Assembly (NCBI GenBank): GCA_964057225.1
Contig: OZ059894.1
Coordinates: 9,300,001 to 9,364,000, forward strand
DNA from: Auanema rhodensis
Taxonomy: Eukaryota; Animalia; Nematoda
Length of the DNA: 64,000 nucleotides
Direction of reading: 5' to 3'
This document shows, in pieces, positions 36,318 through 57,800 of the stretch (position 1 is its first letter; each line of letters begins with the position of its first letter). Position numbers and translations under genes: made by a program. Below the pieces are notes generated by a model. That model did no database searches. It was not told the DNA's origin and saw only the letters and a program-made list of their open reading frames with translations.

Positions 36318-39300
36318 CTACATTCTGCACGAATCAGTACGGGCGGTATGCTCGGATGCAGTTTCTTCTTCTCCATCATCTCTTTCGTCAGAGTCTGAGT
36401 CATGTTCATATGCTTCGTTGGCACGTGCCATGTCGTTTCTGAATTACAAAAACTCATTGAACTATTTCAGGTATAGCCTTACAGATTAATTTCTTCAAAT
36501 TGTTGAGGTTCCTCCTCGATATTTTGTTGTCCCTAAGTTAAGAAGTTAAACAAGGGATGCAATGAATAAGTCAAACTTTGAAAGCCCATGGGTTGTTTGT
36601 AAGATTCTGTCCAGCTTTGCGAGCAGCTTCGGCCTCTAGCATTTCCTTCTTCAATTGTTCACGAATTTCTACTTGTGCAAGTTTATGCCCAGCCGCCAAT
36701 CTTAAATTCTAACAGTTAAAGATGAAGGATCGTAACTGATACCTAATCAAAGCGCGAGGAAGCTCATTTTCCAATCTTCCGTAATTTGCTTCAATCATCT
36801 GATCCATCAATGCCTTTCCTTTAGTTTCGGGTTGAAGGAAGAAACCTAAGATGAGAGTAATAGCAATCAACGCCTCAGGTACAACGAATGCTCCAGCCGG
36901 CCATGTTGATTTGAGAAGGGGTCCCAATACAAACAATCCAATGATACTTCCAATGTGTCTGAAACAAATTATTGCTATTAGATCACTCTGTTCGAACAGA
37001 ATTTACTTCACAGAGTGAAGGCATCCGAATGCACAGCAACGGATTACGGTAGGGTAACGTTGAGTTGTGATTTGAACGATATTGATAAGGAAAACACAAT
37101 CATTGATCATTGTTGTAATAATAACCAAAATAGTAACAACTGAAAAAGAATGTTAAAAAGATTATTTGAAAAGCTAAAATTACTTCTTTGATCATACTTG
37201 CCAGTTGTAAGAACAATGATAATAACTGCCCCGAATAAAGCAAACTCAGTGACTGCAAATGATACAACTTCGTTGGGATTTAATGTTAAACTGCTTACGT
37301 AAAGCTCCCACAAACTGTACCTTACGACCGAATCTAGGAATTGTGAGATCGAGAATAATTATGATAAATGGTGTAAACAAGCGGAAAACTCCATCAAGAA
37401 AGACGAACATAATGGGAGAATCTGAAGATATTAATTGATTGTAATAGATAATTAACTAATTATATACCATGCATTCCATTAACAGTATATAAATATGTAT
37501 TGGATACCATAGCATAGGTAAACATGGATAACATTTGCATTACTGATTGCTTAGCCAAACGAACTGAGCTGAAAACAAGAAAAAGGTTATACAACACAAA
37601 TTGGTAAGCTTAAAACCTGAAGAGATGATAGAAATTATAATATACGCGTTTATCCTCCGATGATTTGTGAATTGTAGAAATTGTATTTGTAGTAAATCTA
37701 GCTTTCGTATTATTCCATCGAGGATGTGCTATATCGTTTAAGACCTAAGAAATTTGAAATTATAATCATGAATAGAATATGATGTTAGTACTTACATCAC
37801 AAGCTTTATTTAGATTTCCATTTGCTATCAACCAACGAGGTGATTCCAAGAATAACATAGAAGCGATGGTTAGAGGACAACTGACTAAATTCAAAAACAC
37901 CAAATAGTTTTGCCAATCCTGAAACAAACATCAGTTTGAGTTGAATTAAGATAAAAATTTCATTTTTTCACCTTTGTTAGTAGAGCGATTAATGACATAA
38001 CCATATAAGCTAATGGCCATTGGTAAGCAGTAGCAAGAATAACACGATATCTACAAATAATATTTTTAAGTTTAGAAATGAAAAACTTATGCTAGAGCTT
38101 ACTTGTTGTTTGTATATTCCATCATCATTGTCAATGACGTCGTCTGAAATGCAATAATATGAAATAATTTCTTGAAATATGTATATTACTTCAATAACTC
38201 CGTATAAGAAACAATTGAATGCTTGTAAAACAGAGAAAGCAATCCAATCATGAGCAGCTGTACTCATTATTGAAGTTACAATAATCAAAAGCTGGGCATA
38301 GAAAAAGATTGTTTTACGTCCATACCAATCACCCATGTGTCCTCCAAAGATGGAACCCACAAGCTACAATACAAATAATTGATTAGAAAGCTTTAAGAAC
38401 ATTTGCGTACTGATCCTCCAGCTTGAATGATCTGAATCCATTTTACTTTATCCTCATCTTTACAAATTAACTTGAATGCTCCTACAACTGAATGAAATTC
38501 CACTGAACTTTTCTGAATTTTTATTTATTTTTGTAGAGAATTTCGAACTAACCACAGCAGTTAGCTGAATACATTCTCTTTCAATAATATCACATTTTAA
38601 ATCATTTGTTGGTGATGTAACTGAAAATAAACATAATTTAATAAAAAAAGAAAAGAAAATTCAATATTTTCATTCAAAGATCAGAAAGTTACGTACTGAC
38701 AGCTGTTGTACCGTCAGGGCGTGTGCAGTTCCAATCAGGTTCAAGTGAGCCAAGCACTTGCATAAACGTGGTATTTCCTATAACAAAGTGTCATTTTATA
38801 TTGTTTACATTGACATTTATAAGTTTTTTATAAGTTTTTTATGATTTTATTGTGCTTTTAGTCTATATTAATCAGCGTAACATTGAAATTTCTTCATAAA
38901 TTACTAGACGCTTTCGATAGACAGCCTCCGGGGGCTTCCGTTTCATTTGATAATCTATTGATAAGAAAGACAAATACGTATGAAACGTGGAATGTCTTAA
39001 TGTTAATTAATATTAAATCATTGAAAAAACTCATAAACAAACAATTTTATATGAATGTTTAATAACTTTTAGATGTATGACATTGGAAATTTGTGAAATT
39101 ATTACCTGCCCATTCGATTGAAGCGTAGAGAATTACGATAAAAGCAAAAATCTGATATGCTCCGAACGGATTGATTTTCTGAAAGAATAGAAAAACACAT
39201 AAATATGTAAGAAAAGGCTTGAAAATTTATTGAATTTTTAAGAGAAGCTTAACAATTTATGAATCAAAACAAGTTAATGATAAGAAAAGAAAACCAAAAT

Positions 39301-39659
39301 GTAAAACATTATGAACTGTACCATATGCCAGATGCGCTTCACATTGAGTCACATATACCCTTGATTACATTGAAAAGATTTCGAACTTTTATTTTTTTTT
39401 TTTGGTTTAAAAAATAAGTTTCAATGATGTGTATAGCATTAAAACTTGATTTACAAACCTGAAGAACTTCCTCAAAATGTGTGTAGAAAGCCACATTTGT
39501 CTTGTTCCTCCGCCTTCGAATAAATGCTGTCGGCCTGGAAATAAAAACATAAGTAATTTGAGATATTTAAGTAATGTGACTTTTATGATAAATAATATGT
39601 TTTTTTGAATAATAAAAAGATAATTACCCATCGGCACTAGATATGGTTGAGCCAACCAT
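36318..39659 (-). CDS. SLC22-family (OCT/OAT-like) MFS organic ion transporter
   Basis: THFEEVLQ|KINPFGAYQ N-terminus; extracellular loop with Cys residues and FHSVVGAFKLIC; GHMGDWYGRK (MFS motif A); MMEY; ESPRWL; FGRK; QRYPTVIR; LQPETKGK; acidic C-tail ending ...TDSCRM* at 36318. Confidence 0.92.
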
Positions 39660-40308
39660 GATTAGAAAGGAACCAAGAAGAAAATGATCTAAGGGTCTAT
39701 TTCTGCATGATGCTTATCAGAAGCTGCCGACAACTAGCTCATGCATAACAATACAACAATCGATTTTTGGATTAAACTTTTTGCTCCAAAAAAAAATAAT
39801 TTTTGTAACAAACTATACATATTTGGAATTTTTATCATGAAAAGTTGATAGTTTATGATGAACTAATAATTAAGATATTAAATCAATGATAAATCATGCT
39901 TGAACTTGATGCTTTCAACAGGAAACTTTTTTGAAACTTAGATTACCATACTTTACAATAGTCTGTAGAAAGGTATAGTATATGAAAGTTAATTATATAT
40001 GAATATTTGAAATATTTGAAATGAAATTGCAAATATGAATTACAAATATTTGATGAAATAACACAGGTATTATAGTATTCGTCATTATGTGTTCAAAGAA
40101 AGAATTTTCGAATATACGTTTAAGTATTAATAGTTAATTAAAAGAATTTTCAACTATCAAATAACATACTTAACTATATTAAATATGTGTATATTCGTTG
40201 ATTTAAACTTATTTCAAAGCTTAACTATGTTCATTACATAATAAGTTGTTTGATGTGTGGAAAAAAATGAAAAAAGAGAGAAAACATTATGAAATCCAAA
40301 TCACTTAC

Positions 40309-40367
40309 TCTTTTCTCGAATCCATCTTCGAGAGATGGGTAGAACCCGCAAGCTTTTCGTTTGTCAT
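40309..40367 (-). CDS. Alternative (distal) first coding exon of the SLC22 gene (MTNEKLAGSTHLSKMDSRKE-)
   Basis: TTTCAG acceptor at about 40430, ATG at 40367, perfect GTAAGT donor at 40308; ends in phase 2, the same phase as the proximal first exon. Confidence 0.6.
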
Positions 40368-40792
40368 TAGTGGACTACAGGATCAGGTTTGAAGCTATGA
40401 GTGAAGTCCAAGCGGGAAATGTCAAAAGACTGAAATATATGAAGAATCATGATCAGTATAGGGTAATAAAGATATGCAGAAGAGACAAGTGCTGATAAAA
40501 TTCAAACTTTTCTTTCATTTCTACTACTCATCTGGCTAACAGAAACAGGAAATTCACAATAATATACATAATTCTAATTGAGTAACTGTTTAGCAGGTAG
40601 ATATTCAAGCATTGTCTTCGAAATTAATTAAATTTTACTGACAACCAGTGCATGAATGGCAGGTACGGCGTGATTGCAGCAAACGTTATTGCTATGTTGT
40701 AGCCGTTAAAGGAGTTTCCAACTTTTTTTTCCGTTTTTTAAGTTATTTATTTACTTCTCCACCTGTCTTATAAACAAATAAATGTCATTAAC

Positions 40793-42878
40793 ATGATTAT
40801 TATAATGGTTGGGGTATGGTATACGTGTAGAACACCTACTATTGCCAGCCATCTATGTTTGTTTATGTTTCTGAATCAATAGGCTGAAAGTAGATATTCC
40901 ATGTTTCCGAAAGGTAATTTTCGTTATTACGTGCCTGAAATGAGTAAATACTATGACATAGCTGAATGGTAAGCGCTGTCCTCAGTTCATTATGCTCTTC
41001 TACCTCATTCCAGCATTTTTTGCAACATTTTTACCAACTAGCGTCAACTCAAGTAATCGTTATCATTTTTCTTTTCGAAATAGTCATTTATTAAGATGAA
41101 TCAGAGAATAAACGTCCTTTAGAAATAGCTGTTCTTTTGGATTCACCAAGACTAATTGACGTTGTAAGTTACTAATATTCTGAATACTTTTTTAAATTTT
41201 CTGATATTAAGGATGAATACACAAGTTCAATTACAATAGTCTTCAATCTACTCATTGAACCTATTAACAGAACTCAGAAAATTCCGGAAACATTCCAAAA
41301 ATTGAAGCATTCATCTCTTCTACATTTTGAAAATTCGTTAGTGTCAATATTTAAATTTTGAGATCTTATTCCGTTTTGGCTCACAAAGCAAAACGTTTGA
41401 TTCTGAATGCCTAAATGACATTTATAAAATTAAAAATAGATAAAAAAGGTTCAAGTCGAATTGGAAGAAAGCTTATCAATGAGATTTTCATTCAAACATT
41501 ATTTCAAAACACTTTTCTGCCTTCTATATCATGAAGAAACGGATTAGGACATCAACAATCTTAAATTTAAATTAAACTTTCGTTTTTAGAATTGTTGATT
41601 CTCCTACAAGCAGCCCATTACCTATTCTGTCGGTTGAGAGCTTTGGGCTAACTCGTGTAGTGAAGCTTCATTTACTATGTGATGTATTCAAGTTGGATAA
41701 CCATCCAAATGATGATCATACATGTCGATTATCGCTTATCTCAAATGTGTTGAATGCTACGAATCTATTGCTTGTACCTCATGTTACAACATTATCCACA
41801 TTGAAGGTAAAAGCTTATATTTCTATAGAGTATGTTGTTCCAACGAATATTCATTGTACAGGCAAATTTGAGATGGAAAGCCGACATTTCAAAAACATAC
41901 GTTCAATGGATTGTTCAAAACAACGAAACATATGAAAAGGTTTAATTCATAGCTGTATATGATGTAGAAAATAATTTTTATACTTTTAAAGGCAATATTT
42001 GAATGGAATGTCTATCGTCAAATGAATCGTACACATCTTGTTATTTGGGTTTTATATTTTTGGAATGTTTTCTCATTATCATTATCATATCCTCTTATTT
42101 GGAATGGAAAGCTATCAAAGGTTCAAAGGACTTCATTTCTATTTTCTCGCAAATCATCCTAAAAACCTTCAGCCATTTTCTTATGGAGCGTGGATGTGTG
42201 TGGGAGAAACCTTAATTCTGCTGTCGTTGTCATCTGATCCGATCTTATCAGACCGTTGGACAGCTGGATGTGAGTTGTATCAGATTCATGAACAATTGTT
42301 TCAAATTCACTTTCAGTTAGAAAAGCCTTCGCTCTATACTCGTATGGACTAGCATGCTGTACTCTATCGAACTACTTACCAGCATTGCTGTTAATGCTCC
42401 GTTTGCTACGAAGTGATGCTCATCCATATCCATCTCTGTATCCAAGTCCAGAAGAGCAAATAAGTTTAGATAGTGAGAGAACAAGGTTGAACTTTCATAA
42501 AATCAAGCACATCTGTATGAAGCTATATGTTACAGACTTACAGCAGTTCTTGACTCAGCCCGCCTAGATTCAGCTAGAAGCACACGAACAACTCAAATGG
42601 AATCATGCCTGGTTCTTAAGAAATTCTCCCAAACTTCTCAAACTTATTTCTTTTCAGGCAGAATTGAAATACACATTAGTTCATTTGAACGAATTTATGA
42701 ATTACAAAGCAAATGGCCAATATCGTAGGTCAGTTTCATACCTTTAAACATAAATTTTTCTAATTTAAAATCTTTTCTTTTTAGATTTTTATGGACATCA
42801 TCTTACAATAGACTACTAGCATTTATTGGTGTAATTTTGCAATTATTTAACGGTGCAATCTTTCTAATGTCCTTGTGA
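40793..42878 (+). CDS. Highly divergent pentameric ligand-gated (Cys-loop) ion channel subunit (lgc-type); 5' end unresolved
   Basis: Spliced in frame: ..FLPTSVNSNESENKRPLEIAVLLDSPRLIDV|DEYTSSITIVFNL (beta1-beta2 pattern); CDVFKLDNHPNDDHTC (Cys-loop-like); pre-M1 AIFEWNVYR; three hydrophobic segments; cytoplasmic loop; amphipathic AELKYTLVHLNEFM; FLWTSSYNRLLAFIGVILQLFNGAIFLMSL* (M4, stop 42876-42878). The start codon is uncertain (candidates 40652, 40793, 40901). Confidence 0.72.
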
Positions 42879-45053
42879 ACAGTAGTCATTTATAATAACA
42901 TTTACGTTATTTTTACGGATTTTTTTTCATTTTTTACTTTTTAAAGCAAAAAAATTAAGAAAAAACATATTTCCTACGATAACAAATATTTGAAAACTCA
43001 TTTTTATACCTCTATAAGTAAGCTTAAACTAGAATTTTTTGATGACTGCTTTATAGAAATGACAACAATGTTTATTTTTGAAATTCAAATAAATTCCTCT
43101 CTATTTTTCAATTTTTTTTTCAAATGATCTTAATATCAATGTAATTGTTTAATTGAATGTTCTTCTAAAGTTTAAACCTTGTTCTATATTTTGCTTTATC
43201 CAATTACGGTTGTAGTTCCGAGTCTCGAATCCGGAAATTATTGGTTTCGGTCAATTCGTTGCTAATGGAATAACGATCAAACAGTTTTCTTATCAAATCG
43301 TATATTTGCTTCATTTTGAAACTTTAATGAATCATGGCCGATTTGTAGCTAAACTACTCTTAAACTTTGTATCTTCCATCATCAGCGAAATTCGAACAAC
43401 CTACACTCAGCATCATTAACCAATCGGACAATCTGTGTAATAGATACATGTTTCTCTCGAAAAAGCTGTTTCTTTGGTCTTTAAAATCTGAAGTGATGAA
43501 AGTATTTTATGACATACTATGGCGTTAAGTGTTAAAGCATGATGTTAAAAAGGTTTAATTAAGTAGTCAAGTTTTATCTTATATTTTCTTTTGTCAAGAA
43601 TTCGTTACAATACTCTCTCACATATATTTGTAATAGAAGAAGCTTAAAAACTTATTTTCGAAGACTATATTGTTCAAAGGATCATATACTTTCACTTTCA
43701 TGGCTTCAAACAGATTTCTTGATTTGAACTAACATGGATACAATTTCCGAATCTGGACTTAATCGATCTCTCGAGCTATTGAACATAGAACTAAGATTGT
43801 CCATCGAGTTTGATCAGTTATTCGCTAAATACCACCTCTATTTGCTAACAGTGTTGTTCAATAGTTCAGTAAATAGAATTGTTTTTTTTCGATTAACTCT
43901 CAATACCGTAATCTTCATCATGAATCTGACGATTTATTCAAGTCTAACGTTTAAACGATATAATTAGGCAGCAACGAAAAAAAAATGAAAAATTCACAAT
44001 GGTTAACTATTCAAAAATCTAGATATGTTCACTGATAGAACCAAATATGGCGCATGACTGTTCTCAAAAAAAGAAAACAGAGATTGGCTTTCCAATTGTT
44101 GACAGCATTGTCTCACATAGTCTCATAGTTACTCGTCATCATTACATTCGAATACATATATGTATGTAGTCTGCGCGTGACCTACGTGATGATATTCTAG
44201 AAATAAATGATAATGAATTAGAAATAGTTCTCAAGAAAGGATATCATGACGTAGTCATTGACTGTTTTGTCTTGTAGAATGATGATCAATGAATTACATG
44301 TTAAAAGCAAAAGCAGCTATGATTCAGTCAATGACATCTAGTAAGTATTAGTTTTGCTGAATGATAACAATACATTTATCAGAGAATTATCTGAAGAATT
44401 CAGCAGAAGGGTGCACATACACTAAACATGTCCTCAATACATTGTATATTCTTAGCTTTCAATCTTACTAAAATAAAAATGTAATGTCTGAACAGAAAAG
44501 ACTGCGTATGTTTTCATTTTCCTATGTCCCAAATTAGAAAATGATTAGTGGCAAGCGCTGAATCTTCAAACCAAAGCGGTTTGATCTTTGAATCTTACCG
44601 AAAGCACAGTGTAGTTGATCGTTTCGTTCTGAAGAAGGATGAGTAGCAGAGAACGAGGTAAGAGACAGCTAAATGAATGAAGAAATTCCAAGACAAACGT
44701 ATGATTCTTCGTTTTCTTTTACCTTTGGTGACTATAAGGTTGTGTGTATGTTGGAATTCTGTGAAAAAGATAGATTGCAAGAGAAATTGCCTTGATGACA
44801 ATGATATTCATTTTCTTTATTCATCATCAACCCGTGAAAGCTGGAAATGATCAACGAACAGCAACTAGAATGAAATAAGTTCTCTCTAGCATGAATGAAG
44901 ACATTTAAAAATATGTTTATATGAAGCAATTAAGCTAGAACTATTATAGTTTCAGAAAAAATCGAAAAAATTTTGAACTTTTAAGCATAAAAATACCGTC
45001 GGATACTTGTTTCAATGAGTTCATTAGCATAAATTAATATTTATACTGAAGAT

Positions 45054-45189: not shown

Positions 45190-48100
45190 GTGAGTTTTCT
45201 TTACATTTTTTTTTATTCTAAAGAAGCTGTATATGCTTGTACTCTGAGTAATTCTTTTTCCTTTTTGTATCGTAGATTATCCGGAAAAATTAATCCAGCT
45301 GAAAGAATCTTTTTACATTTATGTTATTACAATACTGAATATAGATTTAATTGCTTAATATTTCTTACTATGCTTACTCTGCTTAATCTATTTTAATGCT
45401 TATTCCGTTTTTTTTGTTGTAAAAAGATGTACATATGTACATGTAAGCAGCAGGTATCTCAACTTTTACTTGAATTCTTACCGGCATTTCTATATTTTCT
45501 CGATATACTAGATATAATCTAGTTTATTTAGTGAAATTTATTTCATATTTTAGAATCATTTAAACAAATATTATATATATATATGTATATGTGCTCTAAC
45601 TTTAAAACATTGAGCGATTTTCTATATATATTCTTTTATTACCTTCTTCCTTGACAGTCAGTTGTTGACCAGTTAATTGGTCAGTTGTGACTTAGCTCAT
45701 CCATCTCATCCACCTTCTTGTCTACAAGCTATTATAACTAGTCTCCCTCGTATTGAAATTCTTACCCTTCTTCTCCTCATCTACCGCTAGAAAGAAGAAT
45801 GAAGTAGCATGACGAAGGTATAGATGACCCACAAATTACCTATGAGACACCCTCTCTTGGTCATTAAAAGTCTCTTATATCTCAACACTTTAAACCAGCA
45901 AGAGTGTAAAAGCTTCAGACTTCCATCTAGAACACTCATCTTCAACAATTCCATTTTCTTCATTTACTGGCTATTAAAGATTTATTTCATTCTCATTTCA
46001 TGTCCGACCCATTAGATCTTCTCTACCTGATCGTGAAACTTCTAAGTTTGTTTATTTATTTCCTTCATGGAATCCAATTATCCCATTATATTGTCGTATT
46101 TTGATTAAAAAAGCTCTGTGAAATCTACTTATTCTTATCTTGAATACAGTTCTCTCATCCATACTACATGTATTCAGATGTGCGTTTTTGTTCTTTTCTC
46201 TCCAAAAGTGTGTTCATCTGTCAAAATCGTCATCATTAGGTTATCGCATTTTCTTTCTGACCACTTCTTCACCTTCAAAAGCCCTTCGTTCATATATAGA
46301 TCTTTCTCTGTATCTTTCAACCCTTCTTCACAGATCATTTACGCATTAGCTATCTAGCTGTATATTTTCTCCCTGCTGTGCTTGCTTCTTGTTTTCATGG
46401 TGTGATCAGATTATCATGTAGTACACTACAACTTAAGATTTCTTATATCATGATAATATATCTTATTTTTCAATTTATTCTTCTTTTCTCAAATTATGCT
46501 ATATACGATTCTTGTTTGATCCTGCTCATTTATTGCTATATCTAACTTCCTTGAACCTACTGGCTAGCATGGTAAAGTGAATTAGTGGACTGGTCTCTTG
46601 TTCTCTATGTTATTGCATCTTCGCTTTTTCTGGAACACCCACTTCAGCTCTTTTACTTTCTTTCTTTTATTTTCCATATGATCTCATATCATTAGTCATC
46701 ATAGACGAACTATTCGTCTGTCAAAATAATTAAAGTAGTTTATATGTCAGACTAGCCATACTATATAGACAAATGCCTTTTTGTCTTTTTCAATTTTCTA
46801 GAATTGTCCTCTTCATTCGCTTACCATTCACATCTCTTCTTACTGTTCCTGGGTATATGTACATACATCAATGTATATATACATATATACAAACATAGAA
46901 AACACATACGCGACTAAACGCCCATTTCATTCGCTTATCTCGTCTTCAGCATGTCCTCATTGTCATCTCAACTGTATCTGCTTCTAAGCCTGTCACATAC
47001 TGAGATGTCTTTCATCTTTTTGCCGATACTATTAATTATGCGTCAAACACCTTTTCAGCGAATTTACCTCTTTCGCAGCATCCCCTACACGTATTGTCCT
47101 AACTTACCCTTTTACCTTTCAATCATTCTCATTATCGTATGGACACATCGTTCTCATTCCTTTACAGACATTTCTTTTTGAACTCGACTGCTTCAGTTAG
47201 AGAACATTTGAAACCTTTCTCTTATGAAAAATTGTTTTTTCGTCTAATATTTGTTATATGCAATGTTCTCCATTCTTATATTTAATGCTTATCATTAGAA
47301 ATTATAAGAATTCTAGACTATGCTGTAATTTTATTTCAACAAAAATCTGAGACAATGTTACGAAAATCAATTCATAAATTAGTCGTCCGAACAAGTGTGA
47401 ACATATCATAACTGCCTAAACATTTGATCTTTTCTTTCTAAAATTATTGTGACCTCTGCTGCAAGCATAACAGACCCAAAAATATTCTGCATTCACTTTT
47501 ATCTCGTTCGCTCCCTTTTTCTCTCTCTATCATGTTCTCTCATCCTCTGCCTATTTCTCCCGAACATATCTTCATTTTTGTCTTTCATATTTTGCTAATA
47601 TGTCTTGTTTCTATCATCACCTCTCCAACTTTCAACGTTCTCTTTGGTTTTTTGAACTGATACACTAATTTCGTCTGCCATCAGTGTCATGACTATAATC
47701 CAAATACGGTGGCAGACCTGTGTGTAAAAACCGTATTTTTAGACTTTCTAGTTGTTTCATCAGGAAAACAAATGTTTGAGAAAAAAAAAGTTTGTTTTTC
47801 TCCCGCTTTAATAACCATACAAACTAATTGTAAATCTCTTTTTTTTTTCATTTTTGTTTTAGCCATTCAACTATTTCTATAATGATTGATTTAAGCTCTT
47901 CCTTGTTTCACAGATATACCTGTATGAACTATCATTGAGCTGAATATGACCAGCAGTTAGCTATTTCTGCTAATTTACAAACAGAAGAAACGATATCAAA
48001 CTTACAACTTGAACACAACTATCAATATTTCGATGTATCGAAATGTCAATTTGGCCACCCCCTTAAAAAGATTCATACTGTTCCTTAAGGTGGCCAAACG

Positions 48101-54815: not shown

Positions 54816-57800
54816 CTACCAGTCAGCAAAATCATCCATTTTTGCTGTTGCTTTTGTTGGTTCTAATTTCAAAGCACCTTTAGCAGCGCGTTTCTTGGCT
54901 AGTTCAGCCTTTCGAGCCTCCTGTCTAGCTGCCGCCTCGGCCCTACGGGCTTCTAAAAAAATTTATTTGAAGATACATTTTACGCGCATTACCTCTATCA
55001 GCATTGTTAGAAACCACAGGTTTAGCTACCTTCACTGCTTCTCCTTCCCATTCATTATTGTCCCATCCACTTGAAGTATCTTGATTCCAGTCTAAATTTT
55101 GAAATCAACAGATGTTTTGACAAACTTTGATTACTACCTGAGTTACTTGAGGGTGATTTGGATAGACTTGTGTCAGCGAACAGATCTGTTACTGAAATAT
55201 GGAAATTTGTCAAATTAGCAATTTAAAACTCATACCTTTTTCTACAGCTGGCTTAGGTACGGATGGCTTTCTAATGACTGGCTTATCAAAGCTCTGTTTC
55301 TTAACTGCGGGACTACTAGCTGGCTTCGTAGTTTGCCAGTCATTGGACCAATCGTCCTCATCATTCTTCTCGGAAGCATCAGCCCAATCATCTAAAATTG
55401 CAAATATTCATCTAAATAAAATACAAAACTACTAACCAGCAGGATCGTCGTCCAAATCACCCCAGCCATCATTATCAGAGCTTTGGGGTGGAGCAGTAGG
55501 AGTGTTTGTTGGTTTTACGGGAGGGCGACATTCTTTTTCTTCATTATTACTGGGGCTGCCCTCTTTCTTTCCTGGAGATCCAGTATCTGGTGGTGGTGGA
55601 CCCTTATAGAACTTTCCAGATAACGACTTCAGAGCCCAGCTAGCCCATTGTGGAACCTAAGAATGCAACACGTCTTTCTATTCCGCCAAAAAGTAAAATA
55701 TATACCTTGTCACTAGATAATAGAGACTTTCCTCCAGCTCTAACTTGTGCTTCATGTTCCGCAATCAACTCAGGATTTTCACTCACACGTTCAAGAGTAC
55801 TGAGAAAACCTTTAATTGCTTTAAAGGCTTGTTCTCGAACCTAAGCACGAAATTCGAATAAGGTTAATCAGAATGTTAATTACCTGTGACTCAGGATCAC
55901 AACATAAAGGAGATAACGACGGTAAAACACGGTTAGCAATTTCACCGATGGAATAGAATTGTTGAGTAGCGGACAATGCAAGTAAAGCTGCTAACCTTGC
56001 TGGAGGAAACGGATCCTATAGTGTAAGTATTAGGAATTACATATTTGATTTCAAGCTTACTTTCATTCCTCTAGTGAAAGCACTTAAGAGAATCTGTTGA
56101 CGTTTTGAAGGATCCAACAAAGCTCCAACTTTTCCCAAGCAAATTGTCGTGTTTGTACGAATGCCACCATGTTCATCGCCTCCTGCAGAAAGAGACAAGT
56201 CATTACTTGACAACAAAGCATGAGAACGTATGCCTCGATAGCTCAGTTGGGAGAGCGTTAGACTGAAGATCTAAAGGTCACCAGTTCGATCCTGGTTCGG
56301 GGCAACTTGTTTTGCAATTTTAAAAAAATGTTTCCAAACATGATAAAGCAAAAGCAGTGATCACCTTACAAGGAATTATCTTTTAAATTTGTTTTAAGCA
56401 AAGAAAAAGTTAAAAAAAATATATAAATAGGATATATAATATAAATAATGTGAAATGATTGAAAAGGTAATAAAATTTAAAAAAAAAAGAATAATATATA
56501 TAATTTAAAAAATCAACAAACTAAGATACTAACCTTGTAATCTAGCAAGATATTTCATTAACTCCACGTTAAGATTGTGGAAGTTAAGTTTCTCAGCAAG
56601 TGGAACCATGGCTTTCACAGTACTTTCTCGTACAGCAGGTGATGTGTCCAAGAATCCAGTAATCAAATTGCTGAAAATGTATAAATTTGGTTAAAAACTC
56701 AAAATCTTCTAAGATCTAAAAAGCACCTAAAGATTTTGTCATTAACTACAGATGAAGTCAAATGAGCACTGAATTCATCAATTCTCTCCAATAGTTTAAC
56801 ACGTGTTGTTCGGTCAGAACTACTGAACAACTGAAATATGATTGAGATTATTGTGAAACTAACTTTCAAATAATTACTTTAACCAAGCAGGGAACAATTC
56901 TCCGCTGATATTCTTCTTCATCAAGTAATCCTCCTAACTTAAAAAGAGGAATGAGAATATTTGGTCCAGCATCTCCATACTCATAAGTCTAAAATAGAAT
57001 TAAGAAATAACTTTTTTCTGTGATAGAAATACCATAATCAATCTGGGGAGAATCTTATATTTAGCAATATCATCAGGAAATATTCCAAGATTTTCACTGA
57101 ATTATTGAAATTATACAAATACATTTGTACAAAAAAACTAACCGTAAATGCATAAAAAAGCTTTGTTTTTCACTGGATTCTTTCAACTGGAACTCTTCTA
57201 AAAACAATAAAGTGTCCACAAATTTATTCTTGAAATATCCTCCATTCAGTCTCTGCTCTGAAATTTTTCGTTATGTTCAACACATATTATAAATTAAATA
57301 AACCTCTAATAAGATCAGAAACTGACAGTCTGGATGCAGATGGAGCAGCAATTTTTTTGTAAATTTCAACAAGTCTAGAAGATGTAAACTAAGCAATCAA
57401 TAGAAAAGAGCAGTTATACCTAGAAGGTAGCTTTCCTGGTGCTTGAGGCTTACTAATACCAGCATTAAAGCCATTAAAAATTTCCCAAAGAACTATACCA
57501 AGTTGATTCAGATCATTTTGGGCATTTCTAGAAGAAAAAATGGGTTTACTGGTAAAAATATCTATTTGAATACGTGAATGATGTGATTTTGTGAACACAT
57601 GATAACTTCCAATCTCCCCCTTCTGTTACATAAATTCCTTCTCGAATATTTTCATGACTTAAATTAGCCTCATGCAAAAATTTCAGACAATTCTGAAAAA
57701 AATCAATATATCCAAAGAATGGTTCTATGGGAAACTGACCAAAACTTGGAAAAAACCCCACGATACAAAAAATTCTTTCTGTTCTCCACTAAGTTCCCTA

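Follow-up and report, generated by a model that had tools for sequence, protein, structure and literature searches.

The forward strand of contig OZ059894.1 of the nematode Auanema rhodensis (assembly GCA_964057225.1) was analysed from position 9,300,001 to 9,364,000, a stretch of 64,000 nucleotides (nt) that we refer to as the window and in whose coordinates all positions are given. At 40992-42878 on its + strand lies a gene that, with a probability of about 0.6, encodes a functional, extremely diverged subunit of the pentameric ligand-gated ion channel (pLGIC) superfamily, known only from A. rhodensis and its congener Auanema sp. JU1783. Membership of the superfamily as such is very likely, and the gene probably derives from the nicotinic-type branch. 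It represents a new and highly divergent lineage within a well-known superfamily, one that public data do not annotate as such, and not a new kind of system.

Hydropathy predicts a signal peptide followed by four transmembrane-like segments (M1-M4), with a long loop before the last. The extracellular domain measures ∼ 180 residues after the signal peptide and the M3-M4 loop ∼ 70 residues. The extracellular domain of the window protein contains exactly two cysteines, both in the Cys-loop. Four sequons stand at homologous extracellular positions in the two species, the fourth abutting M1 and perhaps too near the membrane to be glycosylated, and the N-terminal domain is probably glycoprotein-like. 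In whole-protein searches the joined window protein of 394 residues was represented by its JU1783 orthologue (CAI4225138.1), and the window side was searched exon by exon. The Pfam profile Neur_chan_LBD (PF02931) matches CAI4225138.1 at profile positions 117-191 (E 9.4e-4, 19.1 bits) and the Cys-loop exon of the window at positions 122-158 (E 0.16, 11.8 bits); this exon alone was weakly positive, and the other exons have no Pfam match. By its ESM Atlas features CAI4225138.1 falls among pLGICs: of its 30 nearest clusters, 27 combine Neur_chan_LBD with Neur_chan_memb and three have Neur_chan_LBD alone, the top cluster scoring 0.94 with 200/256 features shared. The nearest clusters are nicotinic acetylcholine receptor (nAChR)-alpha-like and nematode Neur_chan_LBD proteins, and the Cys-loop exon alone finds nematode Neur_chan_LBD clusters at 0.89. 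The structural neighbours of the Atlas model are a GABA-A gamma cluster (TM-score 0.61 over 310 residues), a lev-1-like cluster (0.57) and an archaeal pLGIC (0.56), in alignments that span 267-310 residues.

The protein also retains several of the residues that are conserved across the superfamily. Across pLGICs the Pro at the β6-β7 tip of the loop is absolutely conserved and is followed two residues later by Asp ([F/Y]PxD), the residue before the Pro being Phe in 71% or Tyr in 25% of cases; the pre-M1 Arg, which forms a salt bridge to the loop Asp, is 94% conserved, the M2-M3 Pro 88%, and the M1 kink Pro, which stands 12 residues beyond that Arg, 77% (Jaiteh et al., 2016; PMC4795631). Of the seven residues with the highest conservation on that list, both Auanema species have five, namely the loop Pro, the loop Asp, a β9-like Trp, the pre-M1 Arg and the M2-M3 Pro (the positions of the last two were assigned by manual alignment and not by structure). 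The pre-M1 Arg stands a few residues before M1 (..VYR in one species, ..ITR in the other).

The region is AT-rich and its introns are short (the G+C content of the window is 33%). The gene model was built from three-frame translation and splice-site inspection, and then from RNA contigs: public sequencing runs were compared with window 39000-44500, and four runs of one study gave spliced contigs. These runs are RNA-derived, since their contigs have every proposed intron removed at GT..AG. The coding sequence consists of 11 exons (1185 nt; 394 codons plus TGA) and has zero internal stops; all ten coding introns, together with one intron in the 5' untranslated region (5'UTR; 40914-40961), are GT..AG and are removed exactly in the RNA contigs. 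The contigs confirmed nine junctions of the inspection-based model, corrected one and added the 5'UTR intron. They end exon 8 at 42485 (not 42528) and place an extra 76-nt exon, 42536-42611, next; a model that spliced exon 8 directly onto exon 10 from a phase-0 donor at 42529 was rejected, as the RNA joints put the donor at 42486. The gene is transcribed and correctly spliced, and the intact multi-exon open reading frame described in the initial annotation, which was made from the letters of the window alone, is borne out. The start at 41014 given there has to be revised: the true start codon is the ATG at 40992, with an in-frame stop upstream of it, and position 41014 falls 22 nt into the first coding exon. 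The contig depth of the gene is 3-9, contig depth being a poor measure of expression. No paralogue was found within the window by tblastn of all exons. The exons, with their assigned features, are as follows.

40886-40913, + strand: 3' end of the 5'UTR exon; joint 40913/40962 (skipping 48 nt) in contigs of runs X2 and X3 that reach 27-28 nt upstream.
40962-41052, + strand: start-codon exon (coding 40992-41052, 20 codons plus 1 nt) with a hydrophobic, signal-peptide-like N-terminus; RNA joints, upstream stop, hydropathy.
41096-41163, + strand: coding exon 2, start of the extracellular domain, β1-like ...LDSPRLIDV; RNA joints, 68% identity to JU1783.
41212-41336, + strand: coding exon 3, β2-like DEYTSSITIVFNL, then the region where WxDxRLxW and WxPD are expected, with a conserved sequon (NRT in the window, NST in JU1783); RNA joints, alignment.
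41590-41806, + strand: coding exon 4, C-x14-C loop with Cys codons 41678-41680 and 41723-41725; Pfam, phmmer, alignment.
41862-41939, + strand: coding exon 5, β9/loop-C-like (RWK..., NNETYEK) without a Cys pair; RNA joints, translation, alignment.
41992-42120, + strand: coding exon 6, pre-M1 Arg (42016-42018) and M1 (∼ 42034-42102), mid-M1 Pro absent; translation, alignment, hydropathy.
42173-42269, + strand: coding exon 7, M2-like segment and M2-M3 loop with the conserved Pro; translation, alignment, hydropathy.
42317-42485, + strand: coding exon 8, M3 (∼ 42325-42402) and beginning of the intracellular loop, YPSPEEQISLDSERT, the same in the two species; RNA joints, 76% identity, hydropathy.
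42536-42611, + strand: coding exon 9, part of the intracellular loop, in which the LDSxR motif recurs; joints 42485/42536 and 42611/42658, 84% identity.
42658-42728, + strand: coding exon 10, the part of the intracellular loop that resembles a pre-M4 helix; RNA joints, 22/23 residues identical to JU1783.
42785-42920, + strand: coding exon 11, M4 (∼ 42804-42875), TGA at 42876-42878 and a short 3'UTR to ∼ 42915-42920; RNA contig ends, translation, hydropathy.

A 7-codon upstream open reading frame (MFPKAEW) starts at ATG 40901, spans the 48-nt UTR intron and, after splicing, ends at the stop 40970-40972. The RNA contigs stop short of the true 5' end of the transcript.

The locus of JU1783 (L001) is collinear with the window, its genes being a PHF10-like gene, PPP1R21/KLRAQ, a sugar-transporter-type gene of the major facilitator superfamily (MFS; opposite strand), the gene described here and a Patched-family gene. 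Aligned exon by exon, the window protein and CAI4225138.1 are 65% identical in amino acids overall. Exon lengths and phases are common to both species in the spliced alignment, save for small in-frame length differences in three exons and for one intron: the 52-nt intron at 41940-41991, which separates coding exons 5 and 6 of the window, is missing from JU1783, where a single 207-nt exon (L001 10657-10863) takes the place of both. Intron sizes differ elsewhere, with 253 versus 47 nt after exon 3 and 50 versus 441 nt after exon 8 (window versus JU1783). Nucleotide similarity between the loci is confined to the exons.

Synonymous divergence (dS) is not estimable because synonymous sites are saturated, and the proportions of non-synonymous (pN) and synonymous (pS) differences were used in its place. 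Over the whole coding sequence pS is 0.81 (saturated), pN 0.21 and pN/pS 0.26; a pN so far below the saturated pS argues for purifying selection on the protein. For four neighbour genes the corresponding values are pS 0.73-0.82 and pN 0.11-0.18, at identities of 71-83%. Judged by these values, the gene evolves faster than its neighbours yet is clearly under purifying selection. Purifying selection and the RNA evidence together exclude a pseudogene. The initial annotation had reached the same view from the preserved frame and splice phases, and it holds on the evidence of correct splicing, a syntenic orthologue with conserved phases and the low pN. Nor does the gene evolve neutrally and untranscribed, a circumstance that had been named as one that would overturn the earlier interpretation: the RNA contigs are spliced and pN/pS is 0.26.

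The 390-residue CAI4225138.1, recorded as an 'unnamed protein product' with no Pfam domain, is the sole real relative that was found. An exhaustive phmmer search of 1.84 billion cluster representatives, with the 72-residue Cys-loop exon as query (among the less conserved parts of the protein), returned it at E 2e-13. Word-seeded searches of 5.8 billion proteins with full-length CAI4225138.1 and with residues 255-390, its most conserved part (E up to 10), returned only CAI4225138.1 itself and no C. elegans protein, and a scan of metagenome contigs with CAI4225138.1 gave no related loci. No characterized C. elegans lgc or acr gene is a clear 1:1 orthologue, at a sensitivity with which relatives below ∼ 30% identity could be missed. 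Within the data searched the family thus has two members, both from Auanema, and is apparently restricted to the genus. A 127-residue tandem-repeat protein from a JGI metagenome (P0002, E 1.7e-4), the other match of the exon search, was judged to be a compositional or chance match. It comes from a 7-kb metagenome contig and matches the strand before the Cys-loop twice, with 63% identity over 32 residues.

The distribution of constraint along the protein was absent from the observations of the initial annotation and is, in our view, the strongest clue to what the protein does. The intracellular loop is the most conserved region and the extracellular domain the least. The extracellular exons are 52-68% identical between the species and the M1-M3 exons 62-76%, whereas the two exons that lie wholly inside the M3-M4 loop reach 84% and 96%. 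Likewise, pN falls from 0.277 in the extracellular domain to 0.213 in M1-M3 and 0.059 in the intracellular loop, where pN/pS is ∼ 0.07. An LDSxR motif occurs three times in the M3-M4 loop (LDSER, LDSAR, LDSAR), within 21 residues (window 42460-42590), and all three copies are conserved in both species. A fourth copy, LDSPR, occurs in the first β-strand region. This steep gradient, from the intracellular loop over the membrane domain to the extracellular domain, looks opposite to what is generally expected of pLGICs, and the inversion points to an essential cytosolic interaction.

The extracellular domain and pore are unusual in their details. In the metazoan Cys-loop the two cysteines canonically enclose 13 residues. 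The loop of the window protein reads C-DVFKLDNHPNDDHT-C and encloses 14 residues, as does that of JU1783; the C-x14-C loop first noted from the sequence is exact. It is the segment from the first Cys to the Pro that is one residue longer (9 positions, not 8), and the distance from the Pro to the second Cys is the usual 6. HPND is found in both species inside a fully conserved NHPNDDH. The M2-like string PFSYGAWMCVGETLILLSL, also correctly quoted at the outset, opens exon 42173-42269; its pattern W.C.GETLI.LSLS is conserved between the species and the pre-M2 stretch is KLSK in one and KCSP in the other. Canonical binding-site and selectivity motifs, as defined for the aromatic box and for GEK in established work on nAChRs, had been reported missing, and inspection of the exon translations agrees: there is no WxDxRLxW, WxPD, vicinal Cys pair, GEK or PAR, and neither the loop A WxPD, the loop B Trp, the loop C Tyr and Cys pair nor the loop D Trp is found. 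JU1783 has one Trp close to loop B, at a position where the window has Leu. There is almost no sequence before the first β-strand, with no N-terminal helix, and the stretch from β2 to the Cys-loop is shortened. The DVDE-type β1-β2 motif (..IDVDEYTSS..) and a Trp ... N/D-R pattern around M4 recall what we take to be nicotinic features, in agreement with the neighbours found in the Atlas.

Since none of the signature residues of loops A to D is present, and no part of the protein evolves faster than its extracellular domain, the classical agonist pocket would appear to be gone, which would make gating by a classical transmitter at the orthosteric aromatic box unlikely. The residues that serve the coupling of the extracellular to the membrane domain (the Pro and Asp of the loop, the pre-M1 Arg and the Pro of M2-M3) seem to be kept and are conserved, so that the product probably still folds and assembles as a subunit of a pentamer. 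With the strongest constraint on the M3-M4 loop, its essential activity most likely needs a cytosolic partner, be it for trafficking, anchoring or regulation. We tentatively suggest, at somewhat less than even odds, that the protein may serve either as a structural or accessory subunit that binds no agonist or as a channel-fold protein with an intracellular output. That a non-ligand-binding accessory role or an unconventional mode of gating, as first proposed, would fit the missing motifs and the fast-evolving extracellular domain is plausible. A more speculative version, which we hold to be rather unlikely, is that a nicotinic-type subunit gave rise to a protein with the pentameric channel fold and without transmitter gating, a genus-specific 'pseudo-channel' that would act mainly via its highly conserved intracellular loop, which carries the three LDSxR repeats and the invariant pre-M4 helix, as a scaffold, trafficking or signalling module.

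The main rival to an accessory subunit or a protein with intracellular output is a functional homomeric or heteromeric channel whose remodelled, fast-evolving extracellular domain senses a stimulus that is non-classical or particular to the species, for instance protons, a peptide, a metabolite or a molecule of the pheromone type. The coupling residues and NHPNDDH are conserved, which suggests that the gating machinery is kept, and so is the pattern of the M2-like segment. Over the superfamily as a whole the core is far less variable than the binding-site motifs (PMC4795631), and many orphan ligand-gated ion channels (LGICs) of nematodes proved to be gated by unexpected ligands (PMC9962794). 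However, the extracellular domain is the least constrained part of the protein (pN 0.277), which would be unusual for a specific receptor site, and the strongest constraint falls on the intracellular loop instead. Such a channel would also have to conduct without a pre-M2 selectivity motif and without the M1 kink Pro, and with an indel between the orthologues in the upper M2/M2-M3 region. We therefore regard a channel for an unconventional ligand as rather unlikely.

Several results weigh against placing the gene in the superfamily at all, or against the role proposed for it. Both Neur_chan_LBD scores (19.1 and 11.8 bits) are below the gathering score of 26, Neur_chan_memb (PF02932) has no match at E up to 10 in CAI4225138.1 or in any window exon, and no formal Pfam threshold is reached for the family. 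Phmmer comparison of CAI4225138.1, whole and in halves, with all PDB chains gave no pLGIC even at E 10 (matches to uS7, YkoE and G-alpha-q were chance only). The sole evidence on the fold is the medium-confidence ESM model of CAI4225138.1 in the Atlas (predicted local distance difference test, pLDDT, 0.63; predicted TM-score, pTM, 0.49), and AlphaFold2 run without an alignment on the same protein gave a pLDDT of 36 and an unusable model. His replaces Phe or Tyr before the loop Pro in both species. The M1 kink Pro is absent, with no Pro or Gly at its place in either species (the only Pro of M1 is near the cytoplasmic end, SYPLIW/SFPLIW), and an indel separates the orthologues in the M2 region just before the M2-M3 Pro. 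The mechanism outlined above, finally, draws on the conservation patterns of two sequences only.

The earlier description of pLGIC topology has support of a weak or indirect kind, from hydropathy, the sub-threshold Pfam match, the Atlas features and model, and the conserved Pro, Asp, Arg and Pro; the Neur_chan_LBD match that was looked for lies at the Cys-loop position and scores too low. The absence of a curated-threshold match or of sequence similarity to any solved pLGIC, the non-canonical loop spacing and the failure of AlphaFold2 to give a fold are what would be expected of an unrelated, lineage-specific four-pass membrane glycoprotein whose Cys...P.D...Cys resemblance arose by chance. 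We consider such a coincidence improbable, because the two orthologues independently match the same part of the Neur_chan_LBD profile, the 30 nearest Atlas clusters are pLGICs without exception, as are the three sets of structural neighbours (TM-scores 0.56-0.61), the order of segments (signal peptide, β-rich domain, Cys-loop, Arg, three transmembrane segments, loop, transmembrane segment) is that of the family, and the protein has five of the seven residues conserved across the superfamily.

Least probable is a decaying former channel gene, still transcribed but under relaxed selection and turning into a pseudogene, which would account for the faster divergence than in the four neighbours (65% versus 71-83% identity, pN 0.21 versus 0.11-0.18), for the loss of many family signature residues and for a contig depth (a poor expression measure) that is low against that of the neighbouring transporter gene, but is at odds with reading frames that are intact in two species with saturated synonymous sites, with pN/pS values of 0.26 overall and ∼ 0.07 in the intracellular loop, and with correct splicing and the conservation of intron phases, sequons and both loop cysteines.

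Nematodes have the largest known repertoires of Cys-loop channels, which are major anthelmintic targets. Their LGIC repertoires are known as large and odd (PMC9962794). A functional, diverged subunit of the kind described here would mark how far a member can drift under selection, with a 14-residue loop, no recognizable agonist pocket or selectivity motif and profile scores below threshold. With more constraint on its cytoplasmic loop than on ligand or pore regions, it would provide a tractable natural case for non-classical roles of the pLGIC fold; CRISPR and RNA interference methods are, as far as a bioRxiv report (10.1101/429126) indicates, at hand for Auanema. Public annotation misses such members, the orthologue being an 'unnamed protein product' with no Pfam domain.

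Around the gene, the MFS/sugar-transporter-type gene occupies 36600-40435 on the - strand; its RNA contig depth is 60-87, it has introns at 39179-39458 and 39534-40307, and it is 83% identical to its JU1783 orthologue. On the other side, two blocks (45643-45684 and 45751-45811) are 88% and 78% identical to L001 14081-14122 and 14204-14266, and stand out in an otherwise unalignable gap of ∼ 7 kb to the Patched-family gene, in which no JU1783 gene is called. A tRNA gene at 56232-56304 on the + strand (RF00005, 68.6 bits) is the only Rfam match of the window.

Among known systems, nicotinic-type Cys-loop subunits (PF02931 plus PF02932, including the orphan nematode lgc and acr proteins) are alike in domain order, with a disulphide loop containing Pro-x-Asp, a pre-M1 Arg, M1-M3, a long M3-M4 loop and M4. 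The Auanema protein differs from them in a loop spacing of 14 instead of 13, in the His that replaces Phe or Tyr before the Pro, in the lack of the loop A-D signatures, of GEK or PAR and of the M1 kink Pro, in an extracellular domain that is ∼ 30 residues shorter than the generally accepted canonical length and lacks the N-terminal helix, and in an intracellular loop that is the most conserved region and not the least. A precedent for the loop itself is a clade of nematode pLGICs without the cysteines, in which a YPFE Pro-loop is shifted in register (Dirofilaria immitis Q70GM3 and four relatives; PMC4795631). Compared by description, this too is a nematode Pro-loop, elsewhere rigid, that is shifted by one residue and altered in its consensus residues; one-residue shifts of register are therefore tolerated. 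In that clade the shift is towards the N-terminus, the aromatic residue is retained and the cysteines are absent, whereas the Auanema loop keeps its cysteines, has His for the aromatic residue and gains its extra residue between the first Cys and the Pro. For function, the closest parallel, by analogy only, may be C. elegans CUP-4, an LGIC homologue needed for endocytosis by coelomocytes (Patton et al., 2005, as related in PMC10298762) and thus a diverged nematode member of the family with a non-synaptic, cell-biological role, of the kind that a hyper-conserved intracellular loop would fit.

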